This document shows, piece after piece, positions 42,519 to 59,290 of a DNA stretch of 64,000 nt. A model generated the notes under the pieces. That model saw only the letters and a list, made by a program, of their open reading frames with translations. It did not search any database and had not been told where the DNA came from. Source of the DNA: Anthoceros angustus (Eukaryota; Plantae; Anthocerotophyta); assembly GCA_010909165.1 (NCBI GenBank), contig MU008169.1, positions 62,001 through 126,000 on the forward strand, given 5' to 3'. The position numbers and the translations under genes were made by a program. Within the stretch, counting starts at the first letter, position 1. Each line of letters opens with the position of its first letter.

Positions 42519-45247
42519 TCACGACTGAAATGACGATGACGTCAAGTTTTCCATGTGCTCGGAAGACCACAGGCTGCCCGATCTAGAACTAAGCCATTCT
42601 GTGTTGGAGACCGAGCAGGCATCTGTTCCATCTGTTTCGAGACCTCCCGACATAAAGGCTTCCACCGACTTGCTTTGGGAATCTCCAAATCGTCGACCCT
42701 TCGCACAACTTCGCAGAGGGCCCACTTGCAGCAAGCCTAAGTCCCTAAGTTGTTGCACAATCTGGGCCATGGACGGTCTGTGTCGACCACTGGTCTTGAC
42801 GCACCACAAAGAAAGCTTGATCAGCTCAATAAATTCGAAGTCGTCATACGCATCCCCCAAATTCGGATCACACAGCTCTAGGATCTGTCCTGCTTTCCAG
42901 GCTTGCCGAACCTGAAAATGGCTACCAAGGTGTTAAGGGTCTGATTGGGAGCATGTCCCAGAAATAACTAGCTGGTGTACAAATGACTTGAGGCTTACCC
43001 GCTGGCCGATGAAAATATGATCCTGTGGGTCAGTCGGGTGTCTTGCTGTGAGTATCTCCATAAGCAGAACTCCAAACGCATACACATCGCTCTTCTCTGT
43101 GAGTTTTCTTGTTTGGTAGTACCTACAGGAAGGATAGTAATCAAACTGGGGAAGCAGGGTCCCGTATTGACAATTCACTTGTAGTATCCTACGGTAGAAG
43201 GCGAAGCTTACTCTGGATCCAGATAGCCGAAGGTTCCTTTTACCACAGTTGTAATATGAGTAGCATCTGGTTCGACTGCTACCATTTTGGAGAGGCCGAA
43301 GTCTGCCACTTTGGCACACATCATGTCATCCAGAAGAATGTTGTTACTCTTCACATCACGATGGAAAATGGCTGGCCTGCATCCGTGATGTAGGTACTCC
43401 AGACCTGTAGAACAGTACGTACATTTATGAGCCTGTCCACAGTACATCGTGTCACCTCGTCCAGCCTGTGCCCTGTGTTTCCCCAACCACCTGTCCACAG
43501 GTATACCTACCTTCTGCAACTTGCATCACTATCCTTGTCCTTTCGTTCCAGCTCAATGGTTGGGACACAGCGTTATCGCCTGAGAAACAAGTTCCAACGC
43601 CGTCAGACATGCCGTCTTGCCTTTCCACACGACTATCCGCATATATGTTTAGGCAAGTCAAGTTACCATGGAGTCTCTGATGGAGGTCCCCTCCGCTCAT
43701 GTATTCATACACGAGTATCTTAGTTTTCCATGCGAGGCAGTAACCCACAAGGCAGACAAGGTACTGGTGATGCACCACAGACAGCAGCTTAATCTGCACA
43801 TCCAAGTCGGCATCTGTTTTTGAATCGGATACAGTAGAGTGGTGCCTTGAGAACTTCAACAGCAATTTGGTGCAAAGAGCATTCATGGTACACCAGGCTC
43901 ACCTCATTGTAAAACTCATCTTTGCCTTGGCTAGAAATTGCTGATAAGACCTTGACAGCAACTTGTCGCCCGTCTGCCAGCTTGCCATGATAAACTTTCC
44001 CAAAGCCACCTTGACCGAGCTTCTTCTCAAATCTGTTCGTAGCTCGCCGAATCATGGCTAGCGACAACGGCAGACATCGCCCTCCATCTTTCAGCAACTC
44101 ATTTGACAGATGCTTCCCCGCTGGATTGAAGACACCTACAAATCCAAAGCATCCCAGAATGTAGTACATCAGCACAATCATTCGGGCCCTAATTTTCAGG
44201 CGACGATCGTGGCGTGGATTGCTTGTCCTCACCTAAACAACAACCATAATACAATGACAATCCCCCGACCAGCGCCCCGAATGCACCAGTAACCATAACC
44301 ACGCCAGCCAGCACCCCTACAATCCAAACCCACGATCGCAACCTTAAACCGGAGCGTGAGCCAGGATCTTCCGCCAGGTGCGAAGTCCAAATGGCCTGGT
44401 CCATCTGCAGGCTGTTGAAGATGGACAGATTGCCCCTATCGCTCAAATACAGCACATAGCTATCCGAGGGACGCGGCCCTCGCACATCGCTGGCCCACGC
44501 CACCCCGCCCCTCCTCCCGACAATCTCCAGATTCCCGTCCTCCTGCAACGCGACGGCCTTGCATTCCTCTCCTTCCAGCCTGCTGAAGTTGCTGTGCCAG
44601 AGAAGCCAGCTGTTCTGGGATTCGATGTGCCACAGCTCCAGGTAGCAGCTGGAATTTAGCGTCAGGCTGAATTTCCCGTTTCTCAAGGGAGTACCCACAG
44701 GCAGCTGGTAGCCAGCCACCATGTATATCAAATTGGCAGGCGTCAACCATTCCTGGTTCCGGCTGTCAGGCCTATCGGCGAACCCCGGCCCCGGCCCCAG
44801 CGACGACTGAGTCGGGAGCTGGGACCAGATGGCGCGTTCGGTATTCTTCAACAGCTTGATGCTCACCTTGCCGCTGGCCTCCAGCAGGAGGTAATTCTCG
44901 TCCCCAGTAACCCCGTTAGACTCCCAGATGAGCGAGCTCCCCGTCTGGTCGTAAATGTTCAGGTACCCGTTGCCCTGCAGCTTTGCTATGCAGCCCGTTC
45001 CCTTCCCCCCCGTCCCGGTCTCCCAGACCTTGCTCCGCGTCCCCTCATACAGCACCAGGTTGCAGTCGCTCTGCATCACCAGGCTGTAGTTCCCCGCCTG
45101 CAGGTAGTTGCTACTGTCCAGGTAACTGAGGCAGCCCAGAATGCTCATCCCCCGCACCCCCAGGACTGCTCCCTGCAGCCCCAGCCCCAGCAGCAGCAGC
45201 AGCAGCATTCTGGGCATTGCTGCTACAGCCCTGAGAGGCACTCCCAT
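42519..45247 (-). CDS. Receptor-like kinase: signal peptide, two bulb-type (GNA/B) lectin domains, TM and RD kinase; 7 exons
   Basis: QSDCNLVLY (QxDxNxVxY motif), second lectin repeat [40 protein letters not shown], and kinase motifs [37 protein letters not shown] and KSDVYAFGV. Introns checked as phase-consistent. Confidence 0.93.
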
Positions 45248-46262
45248 GCTAGGAGCACAGATTTACACCTCGCCACGTCCTGACGTTGCAGGGTCCCGGA
45301 CAGAGGCCGGGGCCGGGGCCGGCCGACCTGCTCCCACAGTCTCGCCGCGGGCACCGATCCAGTGACGAGAAGCCGCATAGGGGACGCGAGAGTCTGGAGC
45401 TCTGGACAGGGGATTGCTGCGTGCCTGGAGGAGGTGGCTCCAATTGTGAAGCCGATTGAGACGACTCAAACAAGCAGCCAGGAGCGATAACAATCCTCTC
45501 GACACGCTCATCAGCTGCCGGCCAAGTGCAGTCGGTCCAAGCAGGACGTAGAACCAGTTCCGGTCCAACGGTACGGTGAACGCGTTCACGCATATGGCAC
45601 CGGGTACGATCTCGTATAGCCATTTACCAAAATCGGCTGCTCAGGAGGGCAAACTCCTCCATTTCCTAAGTCGCTACACTTCAATCTTCAATCCTTGTGG
45701 TGGCGCAACTCAGTTCCTCTTCACCTCTTGACATTATGATAATACATATCCCCACCCTATGGCAGCACCTTTTGCGACACGAGTCAAAGAGTCCCCTCGG
45801 GATCATCACCCCCACATATGTATATAAAATCACAGTGGGTGGTCCCTGCGAAGCCACTCTATTGACTTGGGCAACATTAGATTTTGACTAGAGTATATTG
45901 ATTTTTTGGTATAAAAAAAGAACATATAATATACAGTAATGTACAGCAAAGAGATCACATTTGTACGAAAATCAAATCATTCGTAGGTCCTCTTAGCCAA
46001 TTGCTGAGGGGGAGAGTTGAAAGACATTCTTGCGAAGTATATAAATTAAATCATATACTCTTAATCTCATTCTTGTTGTTGGGCAGAATCACTAATGCCC
46101 AAGCGCTCGGCGCTAGGATAGATACCTAGCGGGAATCGTGAAATAACTTAGATAATTATTCTAACTTAGATAATTATTATTCTAATGGAAAAGTTTTTCC
46201 CTTATTTAAAGGTCCATGATGGCTCCACATTCTAAGAAAGTCATGAAAGGGCCTGGTCTTCG

Positions 46263-46460
46263 ATAAAAGGAGACTTACAGCATAAATTGTAGATAGACAT
46301 GACCAATAATAAAAATAAACACATCAATATCACCATGCAGGATTGGATATATGTCTGCCTTGTCTTCAATAAAAGGAGACTTACTGCATAAATTGGAAAG
46401 AGACATGACCAATAATAAAAATAAATGCATCGATATCACCATGAGGATTAGATAAATATT
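46263..46460. repeat. About 106-bp tandem duplication
   Basis: ATAAAAGGAGACTTAC..CATAAATTG..AGACATGACCAATAATAAAAATAAA occurs at 46263 and 46369. Confidence 0.8.
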
Positions 46461-46659
46461 ATCATGCGATGTTTGATATGACATGTACTCAAAAGCAATT
46501 GTAGGAGGGATTTTTTATTGAGGTGAAAAACCAATGGGAAAAGCCCATCAAAGAGGGGACAACCAAAGGGAACCAGGGGGTCGAGGTGGAGAGGAGCAAC
46601 TAAGCTTCCTACCTAAATTCACCTACTGCACCCACAATGTCATATGCAGAAAGAATAAA

Positions 46660-46757
46660 CAGCCTGCAAACCACGGAGGTAGAGGAAGATGCGTCACCTA
46701 CTGTTGCAGCCTGCAAACCACGGAGGTAGAGGAAGATGCGTCACCTACTGTTGCCGC
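46660..46757. repeat. Exact 47-bp tandem duplication
   Basis: CAGCCTGCAAACCACGGAGGTAGAGGAAGATGCGTCACCTACTGTTG occurs at 46660 and 46707. Confidence 0.95.
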
Positions 46758-47393
46758 CTTGTGGAGGATCGCCGTTGAAAGCGCCCAATGAAGGGTAATT
46801 GAAACCCGTTGTCAGAAGTATGATGTGAAGTACGAGAGGGACAGCCCTGCACCGTGTCACCCGATGGTCGAGAACGCCTTCAATATGCCTTTGAGAAAGC
46901 AATTGTAGTCCTATAGATTTGATGTATATCATCTAGGTCATATCATAAGTCATCTTAAAGCTTAAATTAATATTGTTTTTCTATGGTATCAATTGATGAC
47001 GTAAATCTACTATACAAACTTCATGCAAAGATTGGAATAGATCGCAAAACAAGATATGATAGATGATAAAAGAGACATTACTTGGCTTTAATATTGGATC
47101 TCAGGGAGTTTTCAATGAATATTTAATTATATATTTAATTATATTTAGTACTCCTCTTCCAATGCTCGGTTTTTCTCAATGCATGTTTAACTATATTTAC
47201 AACTTATCGATGTGTTTTTATTAAAACTTCTATATATGTGTGCAAGCGCATAGGAATCTTGAACTCTTCTATGTTCATGAAGCCTTACATTCATAGTAAG
47301 AACATTATTTGCATATTTGAATATTAGAATTGAGTTGTTTAGTTCTTTATTTTTTCTTATAATATTTTATGATTTGATGTGCTAGCATTCAAG

Positions 47394-48630
47394 ATGGAAG
47401 CAACGAGCTTAGAACAAGGAGACGATAACAAAATATTGCACGTAAGTTGTCCTACTTGTGGAAGTGCTTGTCCCAAGTGCCAAGATCTAACTGTCAAACA
47501 CCACAAGCCAGAAGATTCAGAGCCAGTGAGTGTCCTTGACTAATTGGAATATGTTTTGTACAAGCTTTACAAATCATTGCAAGTTTGCAGAATACGTATA
47601 CTTGACCAATTTGTTTAACTGTCTATATATCTATATTTTTTTTATTAAAATATGACCCTTTTTTTGTTTCAGCACGAAGATTTCAACTCGTCACAGTATG
47701 AATGGATAACAGTGAAAGTTATGTATCAACATAGCTCCAGTATGGAGATGGTGAAAACCAAGCCTAACCATGATATTGGAGCAACTAATGATGACTATGA
47801 TTCTGAAGCAACCATCGAAGACAAAGAGTATTACTCGAAAGCAATTGTAGCTTGGAGGAAGGAAGAAACTATGAATGGAGTTGTAAAGAGACAAAGATCA
47901 GATGGCCTTCTTCAAAACGCCAACAAAGTGCAAAAGGTGTGTTCCGAGGCTCTTTTGGGAGGGGTGAGTAACCATGATCTCTTGGAATATGATACAAATA
48001 CGAGATTTTTGTACTTCTTTGAATATGCTTTATTTTCATGTTACAATAGAACGTAATGTTGAATTCATTTTCTTTCTTTCAGGATAAGGATTTGATCGAA
48101 TCTGGGCTTTCAAAATTTGAGGAAGGTATAGTAAAGGTTTAATACTTTATTATGACTTTATCATAGATTGAATTAAATTAAAGTTTGATTTGAATTCCAA
48201 TGTAACTTTCATAGACACAACTAGGAGCGATGAAGAAGCCAAAAGGGGGGAAGAGAAGAAATCAGAACAAAGATCATTGATGAAGAAAGCATCTGAAGTT
48301 TTTCCTGCGCGCGAGATTTGGGTACCTATTCCTCATGACCTTAACATTGTTCTTGCTCCTCAGTATGCTTTAGCGAAAGGAGAAGGGGCACCTTTTGCCC
48401 CTGGGGGATGGAAGTGGACTACTGGTTCTAGGACAAATACCAACAATACACTTTGGAAGGACCGTTATCTACAACCTACCAAAGATTTTCTGGAAATCTA
48501 TGGAGGAAAGCGTGAAGTGATAAGGAGTAAGAAGGCCTTAGCAGAATACATCTCCAAGTACCACAGTAGTGTTTCCATCAAAGATGTCATGACATCCTTC
48601 GTTTGGAATATTCCTATTAAGTTTAGGTAG
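47394..48630 (+). CDS. MBD-like protein copy A (about 293 aa), with N-terminal CxxC-x3-CxxC and a C-terminal divergent methyl-CpG-binding-domain-like motif; exons 47394-47525, 47673-47963, 48083-48125, 48215-48630
   Basis: Four phase-consistent GT-AG exons totalling 882 nt. Contains CPTCGSACPKC and APGGWKWTTGSRTNTNNTLWKDRYLQP..GGKREVIRSKKALAEYI..SFVW, which follows the MBD pattern P.GW..R..D.Y..P.G..RS(K)..L..Y. Confidence 0.7.
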
Positions 48631-48864
48631 TAGATCTAGAATATTCGTATTAAGTTCAAGTAGTAGATCTAGACGACTTTATGAACTAAGCTCAAGTAGA
48701 TCTAGATGACTTCATAAACAGGAATGCGCTTGCTAAGCTTAAGTGCCTGCTAAGCTTAAGGCCAAATTCGTCGGAGACGATGAGCTCGTAAGTTGCTACA
48801 CTTAGTCCTTTTGGTGGCGCAACACAATTCCACTGGCGTTATTTGTCATAATGTACATACGTTC

Positions 48865-48988
48865 AGCCTCTTGCGACAACTTCAATCATGCATGAGTCTC
48901 TGGTCACAAAGTATGGTCCATATCCGAGCCTCTTGCGACAACTTCAATCATGCATGAGTCTCTGGTCACAAAGTATGGTCCATATCCG
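48865..48988. repeat. Exact 62-bp tandem duplication
   Basis: AGCCTCTTGCGACAAC..GGTCCATATCCG occurs at 48865 and 48927. Confidence 0.95.
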
Positions 48989-49289
48989 GACATATGTATG
49001 TAGAATCATAGCGAACCGTGGTCCCTATGGATGAGGTTGGACGACCATTTTATGATGTCTTGACTAGAGCATATGAATTAAATTATTAAATCATGGCTCT
49101 TGTCGTTAACCAAACCATCAATGCCTAAACTAGGTTCTTTAGCAGTTTGTAGGATAGAATATAAGAGTCTGGATAGCTTGTACAATAGAAGAACAAGAAA
49201 AAGACACAACAACATCTTTGAGAAACAACTTCCTATCGTTAGATATGCCGTCATGTCCTTTCACAATACTATCCCTCGAAATATCTATG

Positions 49290-50285
49290 CATTGCCAAGT
49301 CAAAGTACCATGGAGTCTTTGTTGAAGAACCCCTCAGCTCATGTATACATATACGAGCATCTTAGTTTTACACGCAAGGCAGTAATCCATGAGGGAGACA
49401 AGGTACCATAGTGATGCATCACAGACATACCATAGTGATGCTTCACAGACAACAGTTTTATCTGCATATCGATATCCATGTCGATTTTTGTATCTGTATT
49501 TGAATTGGATACAGCATAATGGTGCCTTTAACAATGGGATGCAATGAGCATTAATTAATGGTAGACAAAGCTCACCTCATTATAAAACTCATCTTTACTT
49601 AGGCTAGAAATTATTGATAAAATTACCTTGATAGCAACTTGGCGCTCATCTACCAGCTTCCCATGAGATACTTTCCCAAAGCCACCTTGACAGTACCGAG
49701 CTTCTTCTCAAACATCAGCACAATCAGCTAGGCCTCAATTTTTGGGAGAGGAGTGTAATGATGGGTTGTTGTCCTAGACCTTACCTAAACAACAACCATA
49801 ATACAATGACAATCCCTTGACCAACACCCTCGATGCAACAAGAACGATGACAACTATCTACAATCCACGATGACCACGAAGACCACGATCTAGCAAGCAA
49901 GTCTACAATCCAAACCAACAATTATAGCCTTAGACCAAAGCGTGAGCCATGATTTTTTACCAAGGTGCCAAGTCTCAATGGCTTGGTCCAGGCGCAGGCT
50001 ATTGAAGAGGAACAAATTGCCCGTATTACTCAAATATAACACATAGCTATCCACGGGAGCTGCAGGCTATTGAAGACGAATAAATTGCTCGTATCACTTA
50101 AATACAATACATAGCTATCCACGGGAGCTACGACCCTCGCACATTCCTGGCCGACACCACCTCGCCCCTGACGCTGCAAATCTCTAGATTCTCACCTTCC
50201 TACAATGCAAGAGTCTTGCACTCCTCTCCTTCGCTGAAGTTGTTGTGCTAGAGAAGCGAGCTGTTCTACGATTCCAAGTGCCCTA
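49290..50285 (-). pseudogene. Degenerate lectin receptor kinase fragment (second lectin domain, TM and kinase N-lobe)
   Basis: Colinear similarity to about 43655-44630, with stops, frameshifts and an internal duplication of about 68 bp (49994/50062). Confidence 0.85.
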
Positions 50286-50662
50286 TGTGTGTCGCCAAAT
50301 GGACACACATCTATAAGAACATAATTTGAAATGGACACACATAATATGAATATTTTTATTATTGTTAAATAGGGAAAATATATTCGGGACACCTCCCTTA
50401 ATGGGACCTCTAAGGGCACTCCGAACCAGTCTCAATTAGGGGGGGTGGACTGTAGAAACATCCCTGACCAGGGCGCACTGGACAGCCGGTGAACTTGCGA
50501 GCGCATTGGCTTTGGCGCACGTGAACTTCCTGCTTGGCACGTACAGGCAGGGCAATTTCTGCTCTTGTCGTGATCAAATAAGATGTCCCTTGCCTATGCT
50601 GCTGCGGAAATGTATGATAAAGGATACCGGATTGGCCTGTGTTTGAGGTGGAACATTAAAGA

Positions 50663-51980
50663 TTGGATGGAGAGAGGCGCTTCCATGATCCGACTTTCCA
50701 CAGCCATGAATTCGACTTAAGTCGCCTCCGAGCAGATTGTGAGACAATCGTGCTGCTTCGTTTATCAATCCAGTGCGAGGGCGTGGCGAGCCTGAATCAG
50801 GCCGTGCGTGTGGATGAGATTATGGATGATCATGAGCTGGTGGAGGAGGAAATGAAGATCAGCAAGCACCTGCTTCTTGTTGAGATTCGGGATGAGCTGG
50901 TGGAGGCGGAGATGATGGACAGCAAGCAGCTGCAGGAGGTGGTGGAGCAGCAGAAGGAGATGCTGTTCAGGGCGGACACCGAGAAATTCCGACTGCACGA
51001 AACCATTCATCAGCAAATGCAGTTGCTGGCAAAGGCAGACGTCGAGAAATCCGAGATGACTAACAAGGATGGAGGCTGCCGAGAAGGCAAGTAAAAAATC
51101 TGGAGACTAGTGCAGCTGCTGGACGAGAAGCATAGACAAGGTTTGGGCTTTCAAGTTTTTTCACTAACCCAGGCCTGGTTTGGAGAGAATCATGAGCACC
51201 TGGAACCTGTCACCAAAGAAGTGGAAGTTCGGTACAGGTTTCCCGAGGAGCAGCTAAGCCTAACAGAGAAGCATGCACGAGGTTAGATCATGCTTCCACA
51301 AAATTGCAATTCTTGTGGCTTTCGAGCACTGTGCGTACAAACGTTTTTAGAGTGACATAGGGAATCTTGTCTTGCGAAAATTGCAGAATCAGCACAAGAA
51401 CCTGGAGAACGAAATTGAGCAACTAAAGCTGAATCCTACCAAGCACCAACAGATCGAGGTCGAACGATAGCACCTCCAGGAGATGATAGGAACTGAAAGC
51501 TGCTGACACTGACCCAACACCTGGAGAAACTGAAGGACCTTGAAGAAGAGAAAGAGGGGGCATTCGAAACGGTTTACGACTTGGCTGCGCCGTATCGTCA
51601 GTCAGGAGACGAACTGTCTGATGCCAAGGAAGCAGCAGCGAAGGTAAGAGACCTTAGATGTCTCTGTCTGTTAAGTTTGAATATCTGCTTGGAGGCTGGC
51701 GTTTTCCTTTAGCATGCCTGTGGTGTAAGCGACTCGAGACTTTCTTGTATAGGTGCTTCGAGCTATGAACGAGGATATCGAGACGGGCATTGGGGTCAAG
51801 AGGTGTGGCCAGATCGACGAGAGCTGCTGGGAAGATGTAGGTCACGCCCATTCTAACCATCCTGACTGCCAAGCTGAACTTGCAATTTTTAAATAAGATG
51901 AGAATGGGATGACATGATGAAAGAAGCACGACTGGTATCCGTACAAGGAGGTGTTCCTCAACCAGGGGCGAACGAAGGTG
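50663..51980 (+). pseudogene. Coiled-coil plus XH-domain relic (IDN2/FDM-like)
   Basis: E/K/L-rich coiled-coil ORF 50663-51094, then LEKLKDLEEEKE..YRQSGDELSDAKE (cf. KERxSNDELQEAR), GIGVKRCGQIDE at 51786-51821 (cf. IGVKRMGELDE) and W..MM.KHDWYPYK (cf. W..LKxPxWHPFK) at XH-like spacing. Contains stops and frameshifts. Confidence 0.6.
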
Positions 51981-53038
51981 AGGATCTCATGTGGTTTATT
52001 GCGTTCCATGACAAGGGTGTTAACACTGCGTATCGAGCTTGAGTGGATATCCTGCTGTGACTCTGTCTTCAAACTTCCATTCAACCATAGCTAAATGTCA
52101 AACAAACTTCACTTGTAGATAAAACAAGCGTGGCGCCAAAGGATGCATATATGTTGCAGCAGCCCGTCTTTGAGTTGGTCTTCCCGTGGTCATTCCCTCG
52201 TAGGCTCGCGAGAGCCCTCGGGATTGCGTGTGTATGGCATCTGAACACATTATCTGCTTCGCTGTCTGGGGTTCCGGTGGCAGTTTCTATATCCACTTTA
52301 ACGTTGCTACATCTGTAGCTCCCTAAGGTAACCCAAGCACGTCACCAAGCATCAACACTGGTCACCTCGCAACACCACCATTCATTCACCGCACTTATGG
52401 TTCCCCATCCCTCCAGTCGTGTTAGTTATTGCCTTTCTACTATTTGCGTTTGAGTCTCTACATTAGCGTTTTTCAACCCCTAACCCCTTCCATAAGAAAA
52501 TGAAGATAACAAAATTAGTAACTAACAAGATAACAATAATAAATAAGTCTAGTACATAAATAATGAGTCATCTTAAAGCTTCATTTTTTTTCTATGGTAT
52601 TGATAATGTAAATATATCATAAAATTTTCATCCAAAGGTAGGAATAGATGACAACAAAGATATGAAAGATGAAAGATGAAAAAAGAGACATGACCTTCCC
52701 GGCTTGGATATTGGATCTCCAAAATGCTCAATTTTTCTCACTGCATATTTTTTTATATATCTAAGTACTCCTCTCCTAGTGCTTGGTTTTTCTCAATATG
52801 TTTTTAGTTATATTTATCATTATCGAAGTTAAATAATTTTGTAACCAATAAAACTTCTATATATGTATGCAAAGACAAAGTAATCTTGAAATCTTCTATG
52901 CTCATTACGCCTTTCACTTAGACATTCATAGTAAGAGTATTGTTTGCATATTTGAAATTAGAATTAGTTAGTTTTTATATTTTATATTTTATTGTATTTA
53001 CTTATAATATCTTATGATTTGATGTGCTAGCATTCAAG

Positions 53039-54289
53039 ATGGAGGCGAAGAGTTTGGAACAAGGAGACGATAACAGAATATTGCATACAAGCTGTCCTAC
53101 TTGTGGGACTCCATGTCCCAAGTGCCAAGATCAAGCTATCAAATACCACAAAGCAAATTCACACCCAGTGAGTGTCCTTGACTAATTGAAATATGTGTTG
53201 TGCAAGATTTTTAACTTATTGCATTTTTTCTTATTTGAGTATACATTTGTTACTTGAGCAATTTGCCTTAAGGTTTTAGGTATCTAAATCTTGATTAGAA
53301 TGTGACCCTCTTTTGTTTCAGGACAAAGATTTAAACTCGTTAAACTATGGATGGATAACGGTGAAAGTTATATATAAAAATAGTTCCAATATGGACCTGG
53401 AGAAAACCAAGTCTAACTATGATTTTGAAGCAACTAGTACTGATTATGATTCTAAAGCAACTACAGAAGACAAGACGTACCACTCGAAAGCAATTGTAGC
53501 TTGGAGGAGGGAAGAAGCAACGACTGGAGCTATAAAGAGACAGAGATCATATGGTCTTCTTCCACACACCAACAAAGTGCAGAAGGTGTATTCCAAGGCT
53601 CCTTTGGGAAGGGTGAGTAAACATGATCTCTTTGAATATGACACAAATACAATTTTTTTTATACTTCTTTGATTTTGCTTTAGCTTCATATTACAGCAAA
53701 ACGTGATGTCAAAGTCTTTTTCTTTCTTTTAGGCCAAGGATTTGATCGAATCTAGGCAATCAAAGCTTAAGGAAGGTATGGTAAACGTTATATACTGTAT
53801 TGTGCCTCTATCATAAATTGAATGAAATTGAAGTTTGATTTGAACTCAAATGTTACTTTCATAGATGCAACAATTGAAGCTAGGAGCAATGAAGAAGCCA
53901 GAAGGGGAGAAGAGAAGAAATCAGAACAAAGATCATTGATGAAGAAAGCATCTGAAGTTTTTCCTGCTCGCGAGATTTGGGTTCCTGTTCCTCGTGACCT
54001 TAACATTGTTCTTGCCCCTCAATACGCTTTAGCGAAAGGAGAAGGGGCACCTTTTGCTCCTATGGGATGGAAGTGGGCAACCGGTTCTAGGACGAATACC
54101 AACAATACACTTTGGAAAGACCGTTATCTACAACCTACCAAAGATTTTCTGGAAATCTATGGAGGAAAGCATGAAGTGATAAGGAGCAAGAAGGCCTTAG
54201 CAGAATACATCTCCAAGTACCATAATGATGTTTCCATCAAAGATGTTATGACATCCTTCGTTTGGAATATTCCTATTAAGTTTAAGTAG
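53039..54289 (+). CDS. MBD-like protein copy B (about 295 aa); exons 53039-53167, 53322-53612, 53733-53775, 53865-54289
   Basis: Same 4-exon structure and phases as copy A, totalling 888 nt. Contains CPTCGTPCPKC and APMGWKWATGSRTNTNNTLWKDRYLQP..IRSKKALAEYI. Confidence 0.7.
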
Positions 54290-55601
54290 TAGATCCAGAA
54301 GCCTTTATGAATTGGAACATTTGTTCCTACTAAGCTTAAGTAGATCTAGATGACTTTATGAACTGGAACATTTATTCCTACTAAACTTAAGTAGATCTAG
54401 ATAACTTTATGAACAAGGATGTTCCTGCTAAGCTTCACGCCTATATTTTCACCCCTATTTTTCGAAAAATTCGGGTGTTCAGGTTTTTTATTTTTTTTGT
54501 AAGCGCTGTTGTCAGCCATAAATGCTGAGAAAATAGGGTAGTGGCAAGCTCTTGGTCGGCTTTCCAACAAGGGTCTAGTTACTTTCAGCGGAGCACAACT
54601 GCAGTTCCGAGTCCTGAAGAAACCTGCCTGGAGTTTCTCTCGGGATGGCCTTCTTGGGCCTGGTTGCAATGTTCTCGGCACATCTTCAGTCACAAATCAC
54701 ATACAACGATACAGGAGCAAGACTACTAGTCCCCATTCAGAAACCAAGGAAATCCAAAGCACAATGCAAGAGACATTCTGAGAGAGACGACATAGCACTT
54801 CACAAAAAGTCCCGCCATGGCATCTCGCTTCTATGCAATCTAACAATGGATCATCCTAACTTCGTTCCTCCTGCATATACATGCCCGACTACACATGGTC
54901 TAGGCCGCGCATGCCAAGCTCCTCTCTCACTGTCCAATTCAGGACACGAAATCTTGGTCAAGCCAGATAACTGTGGAAACCTGTAAGCCCTGGGTTGAGT
55001 CGTTGGAATACCGCAGGAGACTTCGCTTTGATCCATTATACTGCGACAGCTATGTGCACGGGCAAGTTTGCTTGCACTGAGTGCTATTGTAGTAAGAACC
55101 TTTGAGCAAACTAAACACATTTAATTCGTTTCGCAGGATTGCAGCAGAGCAAGCTTGTCGCAAGGTTCTGGCGCATGCGTGGAAGATCTCTTCCTTGTCA
55201 GTACTTTCAGGTGGTAGTCAATTAGGTTGGATGCTGCTAGTTCGCTGTATGACTTGTTGCGGTCAGACCGCTGTTTAGTTCATCCGTTCCTTTGCGTTGT
55301 GCACAGAGCTATGTCGGTTGCACTTCCTTACTGGGTAGATCTTGCTGAGCACACTGATCTTTGTGCTGAGGCTGAAATGTTATATATGTAGTGTGCAATG
55401 GTTGTCCGTTGATTCTAGGTCTTGCAAATCGGATTGAATAATCTAGCAACATTATGTTATAGTGTGCAGGCAAGAGAATACTGATGAATCCGTAGCAAAC
55501 TTGCATTGTGTTCCTGGCTAGTTGAAGCAGCAACAAAGAAGCATCAGACTCTGCAGATTATAGCATCCCGACTATCGTGAGGGCGTTCGGAGCAAACGTC
55601 C

Positions 55602-58311
55602 TCACGATTGAGATGAATCTGACTTCAAGTTTTCTATCTCCACACAAGACCTTAGGCTACCCGATCTGGAATCATGCCATTCTGTCTCAGAGGCCGAGGC
55701 ATCTGTTCCATCTGTTTCCAAACTTCCTGACTCAAGGTCCTCCACTGAGTAATCTTGGGAATCGTGAAATGTTCGATCCTTCATAGAACGAAGAGGACCC
55801 AATTGCATCAGGCCCAAGTCCCTGAGTTGTTGCACTACCTGGGCCATGGACGGTCTGCCTTGACCACTAGTCTTGACGCACCACAAAGAAAGCTTGATCA
55901 GCTCGGTAAATTCGTAGTCGTTACACGAATCCCTCAAATTAGGATCACACAGCTGTAGGATCTGTCCTGCTTTCGAGGCTTGCCGAACCTGGATAGGGCT
56001 ACCGAATTGTTAGGGCTCTGATTGGGAGCATGTCCAAGAAATCGCTAGCTGTTATACGAGCGACTAGAGGCTTACCAGTTGGCCGATGAACACATGATCC
56101 TTTGGGTCAGTCGGGTGTCTTGCTGTGAGTATCTCCATAAGCAGAACACCAAACGCATACACATCGCTTTTGTCTGTGAGCATTCTTGTTTGGGAGTACC
56201 TGTAGGCAGGATAATGATCAAAATGCGGAAGCAGGGTAACGTATGGCGATTTTACCACTAGTCTGCAACGGTGGAAGGCGAAGCTTACTCTGGATCCAGA
56301 TACCCGAAGGTCCCTTTCACTGCAGTTGTAATATGAGTAGCATCTGGTTCGACTGCTACCAGTTTGGAGACGCCGAAGTCTGCCACTTTGGCACACAGCT
56401 TGTCATCCAGAAGAATGTTGTTACTCTTCACATCACGATGGAAAATGGCTGGCCTACATCCGTGATGTAGATACTCCAGACCTGTACATGATTACATACA
56501 TCTATGAGCCGACAGTACATCACATCACCATGTCCATCCAGCCCGTGCCTTGCGTTTCCACACGACCAAGTCACCTGCCCGCAACTGTACCTACCTTCTG
56601 CAACTTGCATCAGTATCCTTGTCCTATCGTTCCAGCTCAATGGTTGGGACACAGCAGTATCTCCTGAGAAACAAGTTGCGATGGTTAGACATGCCGTCTT
56701 GCCTTCTTCAACACTAACCCCATATATGTTTCTGCAAATCAAGTTACCATGTAGTCTCTGTTGGAGGTCCCCTCCGCTCATGTATTCGTACACGAGTATC
56801 TTAGTTTTCCGTGCGACGCAGTAACCCACAAGGGAGACAAGGTACTGGTGATGCACCACAGACAGCAGCTTGATCTGCACATCCATGTCGGTATCTGTGT
56901 TTGAATCGGACCCCGTACGTACAGCGGTCCCTTTAGAACTTCAAAAGCAACTTCCTGCAAAGAGCATTCATGGTACACGAGGCTCACCTCATTGTAAAAC
57001 TCATCGTTGCCTTGGCTAGAAATCGCTGATAACACCTTGACAGCAACTTCGCGCCCATCTGCCAGCTTCCCATAATACACCGGCCCAAAGCCACCTTTAC
57101 CGAGCTTCTTCGCAAATCTGTTTGTAGCTTGCCGAATCATAGCTAGCGACAACGACAGGCATCTCCCTCCATCTTCAATCAACTCAATCGATAGATGCTT
57201 GCCTGCTGGATTAAAAACACCTACAAGATCGACAGCATCCCACCATGTGCTACATCAGCACAATCAGTCGGGACGTTGTAAGGCGAGGAGCATTTGGTGA
57301 TGGGTTGTCCTCACCTAAACAACAACCATAATACAAGGCCAATCCCCACACCAGCGCCCCGACCGCAACACAAATGATGACGACACCAGTAAGCACCCCA
57401 GCGAGCAAAACCAGGGAGGAGCGTGAGCCATGATCTTCCGCAGGGTGCGTAGTCCAAATGGCCTCCTCCAGCTGCAGGCTGTTGAAGATGGACACATTCC
57501 CCTTCACGTCCATATACAGCACATAGCTATCAACGGAAGGCGGGCCACTCGCATTGCTGGCCCACGCCACCCCGCCCGCGCTCCCTAGTGCCTCCAGATT
57601 CCCGTTCTCCCGCAACACAACGGCCTGGCAAGCCTCCCCTTCCGGCAGCCTGCTATAGTTGCTGGACCACACGACCGAGTTCGACAGCGAGAGCTCCAGG
57701 AAGCAGCTGGAATTGAGCGCCAGGCTGAAATCCCCGTAGCTCAAGGTATTACCCACAGGCAGCTGGTACCCAGCAAGCATGTATATCACCGAGCTCTGCG
57801 TCACCCAGTCCTGGATCGGGACAGAATTGAATCCCGGCCCAGGCAACGACTCATTCGGGACCACGGAATAGAGGTCTTGGCCGGTCTTGGCCAGCAGCTT
57901 GATGCTCAGCTTGCCGGTGGCGTCGAGCATGAGGAAATTCCCGTTCCCCGTATCCCCTTTGGACTCCCATATCACCGAGCCTCCCGAGCTCTGGTTGTAG
58001 AGGTCCAGGTTCCCGCTGCCCTGCAGCTTTGCTATGCAGCCCGTTCCCTGCCCCCCTGTCCCGGTCTCCCAGACCTTGGTCCGCGTCCCCTCATACAGCA
58101 CCAGGTTGCAGTCCTCCTGCACCACCAGGGTGTAGTTCCCCGCCTGCAGGTAGTGGGTGCTGTCCAGGGTGTTGAGGCAGCCGAGAATGCTCATCCCCCG
58201 CACCCCCACCACTGCTCCCTGCAGCCCCAGCAGCCCCAGCAGCAGCAGCAGCAGCAGCAGCAGGCTCCCTGCAGCCCCTGCTGCTGCTGCTGCCCTCACA
58301 GGCACTCGCAT
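55602..58311 (-). CDS. Second double bulb-lectin receptor-like kinase, paralog of 42519-45247
   Basis: Poly-Leu signal peptide (CTG repeat), [41 protein letters not shown] and KSDVYAFGV; same exon layout. Start placed at MRVPV (58311), although the ORF track extends to 58350. Confidence 0.9.
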
Positions 58312-59290
58312 GCTAGATCGCGGCTGGGAACGAGCACCAAACAGAGTCACACCTTGCTGCGTTCTGACATCGCGGGGTCCCGGGCAGAGGCCGGCCGACC
58401 CAGTCCGGCAGTCTCACCGACGCATGGGGGCCTCGGCAGTCTGGAGGCATGCACTTTGGGAAGGCTGCCCGCTGCAGGTAGCTTGAAGGGTGAGACGATC
58501 GTCGAGACGACTCAAACGAGGAGCCAGGAACGACAAACGAACTTTCCGATCAGGCTGATCTGCTGCCGGCCGAATACGGAGACAGTACTCTCGGTCCGAG
58601 TAGCACCCAGGACTGCCCGGAGCCCACGTGTGCTGCTCAGCCTCAACGCGCACCACAGTTCCTCTCCCCCCAGTCCTACCGGTTGGCGGCAGCTTTTTCT
58701 GGTTTCTTGCCACGCTGGTTCTTGGGCACCACCTAGTCGTCCTGGGCGTGCTCGGCACGCCGAGGATCCATGGCCTCGCTACATGCTTGTCCCCACACGG
58801 TGAAGGTGAAGGACATTTTACAAAAGCACGGGGCCACAGTCACGGACGGACACGTACAAACTACATATGTCTACACGCACAGACATGTGCTGCTTTGGGT
58901 TTCCTTCCTTGCAATGTGGCGATCTTGGGCTGGCAGACTTGAGGATGAAGCTTCTGTTTTCTGAGTTTCCAACGTGGGACGTGCCGTACCAGAGACAGCT
59001 AGACTGTACAGCGCCTGCGCTGATATTTCGCCTGGGCCAGGCTCCAAAGGATAGATGCACACCTCAGCCTCTCAGCCCAGCCCTCATAAATCGACTTCAG
59101 CTTCAACCCAGGTCGGTGGACGAGTTGATGCTAGGTCGAATTAGTGGAGTCGACTCACCACACAAGGGCATATAGGAATGCAATTTGAGTGCAAGGTTAG
59201 CGTGTTGACGTTGCGATGCATTGCCTGCCTGACACCCTGATTTGTCAACCTCGGCGATGCATTGCTGGGCAGCTTCTGGGTGAGATGCAT

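Follow-up and report, generated by a model that had tools for sequence, protein, structure and literature searches.

Tandem Anthoceros angustus genes predicted to combine a putative metal-binding Cys4 motif with a DUF7081 domain resembling the MBD fold

Plant readers of methylated DNA are usually counted from the canonical methyl-CpG-binding domain (MBD) and SRA families. The MBD fold also has precedents that do not read the methyl mark, among them the MBD of SETDB1/2, MBD3 and the TAM domain of BAZ2A/B. Among solved fold families, only the canonical MBDs (MeCP2, MBD1-4 and AtMBD6; Pfam PF01429) match the C-terminal domain encoded by two genes described here, gene A and gene B, which are located in a 64,000-nucleotide stretch of DNA from Anthoceros angustus (GenBank assembly GCA_010909165.1, contig MU008169.1, positions 62,001 to 126,000 of the forward strand; hereafter the window). 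The domain was assigned to a different family, DUF7081 (PF23299). The two genes are read here, with a probability of roughly 0.55, as intact tandem paralogues whose products carry a putative metal-binding Cys4 motif, a free linker and a DUF7081 domain of divergent MBD fold, and which bind DNA or chromatin.

Gene models and selection between the copies

The gene models were built by three-frame reading and placement of splice sites on the plus strand. Both genes, at 47394–48630 and 53039–54289, comprise four exons with intron phases 0, 0 and 1, GT-AG boundaries at six of six introns, pyrimidine-rich acceptors and no internal stop codons; the coordinates, the four exons, the shared intron phases and the lack of stops are as the first-pass annotation of this DNA had proposed. 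The predicted products contain 293 (gene A) and 295 (gene B) residues, or ~33 kDa each. An N-terminal Cys4 motif, C-x2-C-x3-C-x2-C (C19, C22, C26 and C29), is followed by a disordered linker of ~145 residues and a basic C-terminal DUF7081 domain (pI 9.5–9.8). This domain contains the GSR, KDRYL and IRSK motifs which, like the Cys4 motif, had been noted earlier and are seen in the products of both copies. A tblastn search identified no third copy in the window.

The two copies share 90% protein identity in exon 4 and 65% in the N-terminal half. The earlier estimate of about nine differences over the last 130 or so residues is exact, with nine differences over 130 residues, and the inferred selection on the C-terminal region was borne out by the per-exon dN/dS analysis that had been recommended. 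By the Nei-Gojobori method, exon 4 has a synonymous divergence (dS) of 0.19, a non-synonymous divergence (dN) of 0.041 and a ratio (omega) of 0.21, whereas exon 2 has a dS of 0.22, a dN of 0.20 and an omega of 0.91. Non-synonymous divergence is thus ~5 times lower in exon 4 than in exon 2 (Fisher test, p = 2.5e-7), while synonymous divergence is indistinguishable between the two exons (p = 0.83); within exon 4, the synonymous and non-synonymous values differ with p = 1e-4. The introns have diverged by a Jukes-Cantor distance of 0.18–0.21, the same as the synonymous divergence of ~0.2. Because synonymous and intron divergence are equal throughout, the similarity of exon 4 reflects purifying selection rather than gene conversion; the latter was rejected given the uniform dS and the agreement of the exon 4 dS with the intron divergence. 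Purifying selection is confined to the C-terminal exon. Indels in the coding sequence measure 3 and 9 nt; the length difference between the copies is 7 nt for intron 1 and 1 nt for intron 2.

These data also bear on whether both copies are unexpressed relics that drift in AT-rich, possibly methylated DNA with frames not yet broken. The neutral evolution of exon 2 fits such a view, as do the decayed kinase fragment adjoining gene B, a GC content of 0.376 with an observed-to-expected CpG ratio of 0.43–0.49, below the flanks, and the lack of RNA evidence (one run, without the sampled words of the locus). However, at a neutral divergence of ~0.2 per site both copies retain frames of 880 nt and 12 of 12 splice sites, their coding indels all preserve the frame, dS exceeds dN fivefold in exon 4, and a 48%-identical relative from another organism conserves both the domain and the Cys4 motif. 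Decay without function is thus very unlikely, and the genes are treated below as intact.

The DUF7081 domain and its likeness to the MBD fold

Exon 4 of gene A aligns with the DUF7081 profile with a score of 47.8 bits (E = 2e-12) and exon 4 of gene B with 49.8 bits (E = 5e-13), over profile positions 4–95 of 96 and at a gathering threshold of 27 bits. Judged by sequence, the C-terminal domain of both products is a member of this family. Exons 1 and 2 yielded no Pfam family above threshold. Across 16 DUF7081 domains, from charophyte to angiosperm, residues G55, G57, P59, A61, P62, W65, W67, G70, R72, D82, R83 and S104 (exon-4 numbering) are invariant, and the corresponding columns, G-x-G-x-P-x-A-P, W-x-W-x2-G-x-R, D-R and S, are all present in A and B. 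DUF7081 clusters of the ESM Atlas superpose with TM scores of 0.59–0.61 normalized by the query and root-mean-square deviations of 2.4–2.6 over 91–96 residues; all other rows have TM scores of 0.38 or less. An ESM Atlas feature search returned no usable match.

The family spreads over the streptophytes, from Klebsormidium to angiosperms. When 1.84 billion representatives were searched by phmmer with exon 4 as query, only 11 proteins had E ≤ 0.001, and DUF7081 was present in all 10 of those scanned. The word-index protein search with alignment A1 as query gave only three matches, and the DUF7081 region of Asimina gave four, with uninformative names. The angiosperm matches are either short proteins with DUF7081 only or proteins combining DUF7081 with PHD_Oberon and DUF7615, and their names are limited to ‘OBERON-like’, ‘uncharacterized’ and ‘hypothetical’. 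No paper on DUF7081, PF23299, DUF7615 or PHD_Oberon turned up in the library searched, and a search for plant ‘MBD-like’ proteins gave nothing relevant. The lineage-specific, unfamiliar architecture suggested by the first-pass annotation therefore stands only in part: the domain itself is an existing, streptophyte-wide Pfam family, but the combination of Cys4 and DUF7081 is rare and was seen in a single other protein, P0001.

The angiosperm proteins share with A and B the family assignment above threshold, the predicted fold, with a root-mean-square deviation of 2.4 over ~92 residues, the GxGxPxAP, WxW..G.R, DR and S columns, and a helical insertion before the helix-capping Ser that P0001 has as well. 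They typically contain PHD_Oberon and DUF7615, whereas A and B lack these and have an N-terminal Cys4 and a C-terminal DUF7081 instead. A, B and P0001 lack the ‘xWPxxGD’ insertion that angiosperm forms have before the first Trp, and they keep the second MBD-type Arg finger, which most angiosperm members have lost. Two of the phmmer matches, the Klebsormidium nitens proteins GAQ79383.1 and GAQ93010.1, each pair a BAH domain with two DUF7081 domains. Like A and B they have no ‘xWPxxGD’ insertion but, unlike them, they lack the Cys4 motif and the 9-residue helical insertion, and Leu replaces the second Arg finger. In sequence, they are the DUF7081 members nearest to canonical MBDs, with sub-threshold matches to PF01429.

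The closest match to A and B is P0001, a predicted protein of 240 residues from another organism, encoded on a 9.2-kb genomic contig of the Logan assembly of SRR33208241. It has the Cys4 motif (CPSCGTTCPSC) followed by a DUF7081 domain 48% identical to that of A and B, and a phase-0 intron placed as is intron 1. In contrast to A and B, its middle region is shorter, introns 2 and 3 have no counterpart, and the gene shows no AT enrichment (GC 0.535; contig 0.49). The gene lies at L001:527–1249 on the plus strand, and the gene caller read through a 78-nt, in-frame, stop-free GT-AG intron-like stretch (689–766), so that the real protein probably has ~214 residues. A, B and P0001 share the four Cys residues, and the motif is the sole N-terminal stretch that still aligns. 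The Cys4 motif therefore probably binds metal, although no curated zinc-binding profile reached its threshold with exon 1; the best was Zn_ribbon_PaaD (E = 0.025, 14.6 bits, cut-off 27). The five largest open reading frames (ORFs) of the P0001 contig contain no lectin or kinase domain, and an ORF resembling RhoGAP is located at L001:5520–6026 on the minus strand.

The relationship of DUF7081 to the MBD fold emerges from structure, Pfam and profile comparisons. The divergent MBD-like domain proposed earlier is matched by MBD folds in structure searches but not by the Pfam MBD profile: PF01429 (gathering threshold 21 bits) gave no row for exon 4 of A or B even at E up to 10. Among the 16 aligned DUF7081 domains, PF01429 is nonetheless the second commonest family, with three sub-threshold members over profile positions 9–68 of 77; the best, Klebsormidium P0004:15–105, scores 15.2 bits (E = 0.017). 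The AlphaFold2 model of gene A exon 4 has a predicted local distance difference test score above 90 over residues 50–137. The structure comparison with MBDs, another recommended step, placed MBDs at ranks 1–5 of 48,161 chains in an exhaustive search and in the top 14 positions of a second-look list, with low Z scores of 3.3–4.4; the domain agrees with the MBD arrangement of a wedge of beta strands, a single helix and a C-terminal hairpin. With the same model, Foldseek found nothing at E ≤ 0.001, and MBDs appeared among tyrosine phosphatases at E values of 0.5–1.7. Searches of PDB sequences with exon 4 (phmmer) gave chance rows only, and the broad DUF7081 profiles A1 and A2 found no MBD among the same sequences. 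The charophyte sub-profile A3, however, retrieved 22 chains, 21 of them MBDs (E = 0.1–0.6). Three lines of evidence thus agree, none of them strong alone, and DUF7081 looks like a divergent relative of the MBD fold.

The HMMER alignment of A3 with MeCP2 places P-x-G-W on P-E-G-W, the invariant Arg on R111, D-R-Y on D121-V122-Y123 and the invariant Ser on S134. The MeCP2 contact residues R111, D121, Y123 and R133 appear to fall in the columns of R72, D82, Y84 and R103-S104 of gene A when this alignment is carried over through A1 and A2. This agrees with the earlier placement of GSR..KDRYL..IRSK at these positions. The spacings W65-R72 (7), R72-D82 (10), D82-Y84 (2) and S104-Y111 (7) equal those of MeCP2. 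The insertion that had been noticed before the second Arg is present, but its length between the Tyr and that Arg is nine residues rather than about eight; the AlphaFold2 model forms a short helix there (residues 89–95). A, B and the canonical MBDs have the strand-strand-helix order in common, and by this alignment they also appear to share the GW, first Arg finger, Asp-x-Tyr and Arg-Ser-Lys motifs at the same spacings. Unlike canonical MBDs, DUF7081 has an invariant G-x-G-x-P-x-A-P strand that precedes the domain.

Proposed function

In the proposed mechanism, the domain would bind DNA through its MBD face. The two arginine fingers would be supplied by Arg72, which Asp82 braces, and by Arg103-Ser104, with Tyr84 adjacent to both. 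The target may be methylated CpG, given that putative counterparts of all four canonical contact residues are retained. The Cys4 motif might provide a second contact or mediate dimerisation, and the linker of ~145 residues would be disordered and evolve freely. Lacking any catalytic or effector domain, the protein would act as a stand-alone chromatin reader or adaptor. A role in chromatin fits the occurrence of DUF7081 next to BAH and PHD_Oberon in other streptophyte proteins.

Several points weigh against this reading. No transcript evidence was found: the one listed run lacks the sampled words, and over 48050–54049 only six short contig pieces of it could be placed, on the kinase remnant and none on A or B. 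The low GC content and the CpG ratio of 0.43–0.49 could mark a silenced locus. Every match to a PDB sequence has an E value of 0.1 or more, so that the case rests on the near-exclusive MBD identity of the matches and on no single score. The searches were run exon by exon. The case for metal binding by the Cys4 motif consists of its conservation across three sequences. The binding face may differ from that of canonical MBDs, in that DUF7081 has an invariant Arg between the Asp and the Tyr where the canonical residue is a core hydrophobic (Val), and an aromatic residue stands two positions before the Asp in A and B where MBD2 has Lys. Across DUF7081 as a whole, conservation does not extend to the second Arg finger. 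Finally, some MBD folds have other ligands, either proteins (SETDB2) or different nucleic-acid targets (the BAZ2A TAM domain).

The last three points lead to an alternative in which the genes are real and the fold is that of an MBD, but the ligand of the domain is a protein, RNA, or DNA that is unmethylated or structured. The SETDB2 MBD, in a protein complex, and the BAZ2A TAM domain are both among the structural matches; most DUF7081 members lack the second Arg finger, and an invariant Arg occupies the core Val position; and the family has its own invariant G-x-G-x-P-x-A-P strand, which is absent from canonical MBDs. Nonetheless, in the clade of A, B and P0001 the two Arg residues and the Asp, Tyr and Ser are all retained with the spacing of an MBD, and the domain is strongly basic. 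This alternative is considered somewhat unlikely, though serious, and binding of DNA or chromatin by A and B is the preferred reading.

A bolder proposal is that DUF7081 constitutes an unrecognised, ancient streptophyte branch of the MBDs that still reads methylated DNA, and that proteins combining Cys4 and DUF7081, with all four canonical contact residues retained, are stand-alone methyl-DNA readers of a non-flowering plant lineage, with an N-terminal metal-binding module unseen in described MBD proteins. It is speculative and rather unlikely. If methylated DNA is indeed bound, plant reader counts have missed an entire family of chromatin readers; if it is not, DUF7081 would be another MBD-fold domain put to other use. 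The gene pair would offer a convenient minimal test member of the family, being small, with a single domain, four putative contact residues retained and a clear selection signature.

The duplicated locus and its composition

Genes A and B lie in a tandem array with minus-strand G-type lectin receptor kinases, identified by Pfam matches to B_lectin and kinase domains (Table 1). The paired blocks that carry them are spanned by repeat families D1, D4, D9, D12 and D20 and are part of a larger duplication, in which 43641–48740 corresponds to 49283–54435 at an offset of ~5.65 kb. A local segmental duplication that also copied a lectin receptor kinase gave rise to the gene pair. The DNA of the two full kinases is 75–91% identical, and their lectin regions are ~61% identical at the protein level. 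In the C-terminal kinase part of the second (56013–56396), tblastn found two stops, and this copy may be broken or contain an intron there. The kinase fragment contains up to 14 stops in one tblastn match while the adjoining gene B is intact, a useful internal contrast within one duplication. A 68-nt unit of the fragment is tandemly duplicated at 49994–50129.

Table 1 Coordinates of the gene pair, the duplicated blocks and the neighbouring kinase genes in the window.
Feature	Position	Strand	Description
Gene A exon 1	47394..47525	+	44 codons; start codon; Cys4 motif CPxCGxxCPxC at 47448-47480; GT donor, phase 0
Gene A exon 2	47673..47963	+	97 codons; acidic, Ser/Thr-rich linker with KRQR basic patch; fast-evolving (omega 0.91)
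Gene A exon 3	48083..48125	+	43 nt; donor leads to phase-1 intron
Gene A exon 4	48215..48630	+	Disordered basic/acidic lead-in, then DUF7081 (MBD-like) domain ~48367-48615; stop TAG
Gene B exon 1	53039..53167	+	Cys4 motif at 53093-53125
Gene B exon 2	53322..53612	+	Linker
Gene B exon 3	53733..53775	+	By splice-site placement
Gene B exon 4	53865..54289	+	DUF7081 (MBD-like) domain ~54026-54274; stop TAG; PF23299
Duplicated block A	46932..48740	+	Upstream region, gene A and early 3' flank; pairs with 52548-54435 (blastn, 79% identity over 1.9 kb)
Duplicated block B	52548..54435	+	Upstream region, gene B and early 3' flank
Decayed G-type lectin receptor kinase fragment	49190..50286	-	Parts of lectin and kinase regions; same ~5650-nt offset as genes A and B
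Two G-type (B_lectin) receptor-like kinase genes	42519-45623 and 55697-58350	-	~13.08 kb apart

The GC content of genes A and B is far lower than that of the flanking kinase genes, as first noted (0.376 and 0.54, respectively); that of their coding sequences is 0.41–0.42, and 0.39 at third codon positions. The observed-to-expected CpG ratio is 0.43–0.49 in the genes and 0.51–0.81 in the flanks. The window (1–64000) is, however, a mosaic in which GC-rich (0.52–0.58) and AT-rich (0.37–0.41) stretches alternate every few kb. Low GC alone is not unusual at the locus, because AT-rich stretches recur along the window.

The first-pass annotation had taken the low GC as a sign that the genes are the cargo of a transposable element or were recently moved by one. 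Their composition, unlike that of the neighbouring kinase genes, and the short tandem duplications common around them would suit such an origin. However, no inverted repeats of at least 20 nt flank gene A or gene B, terminal ones included, and the ORFs between and near the genes contain no transposon-type Pfam domains (transposase or reverse transcriptase). Only two copies occur in the 64 kb, both in the tandem segmental duplication that carries kinase sequence; AT-rich stretches recur throughout; and the relative P0001 has a GC content of 0.535 in a contig of 0.49. A transposon origin was therefore rejected as highly improbable, and segmental duplication together with the kinase accounts for the pair.

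Several smaller features accompany the genes. The sequence TATATAT is conserved within the duplicated upstream block, at 47232–47238 for gene A and 52858–52864 for gene B (162 and 181 nt 5' of the start codons), and is a candidate core promoter. No Rfam family matched anywhere in the window. The last codons, the stop and the early 3' flank of both genes are located in short tandem repeats (48606–48673 and 54268–54414), whose units differ between the paralogues (33 nt repeated 2.1 times in gene A, 51 nt repeated 2.5 times in gene B) and which contain the palindrome TAGATCTA. Further tandem duplications occupy the AT-rich spacers, at 46251–46454 (106 nt, 1.9 copies, 88%), 46660–46759 (47 nt, 2.1 copies, 98%) and 48865–48988 (62 nt, 2.0 copies, 100%), which suggests ongoing small-scale duplication at the locus.

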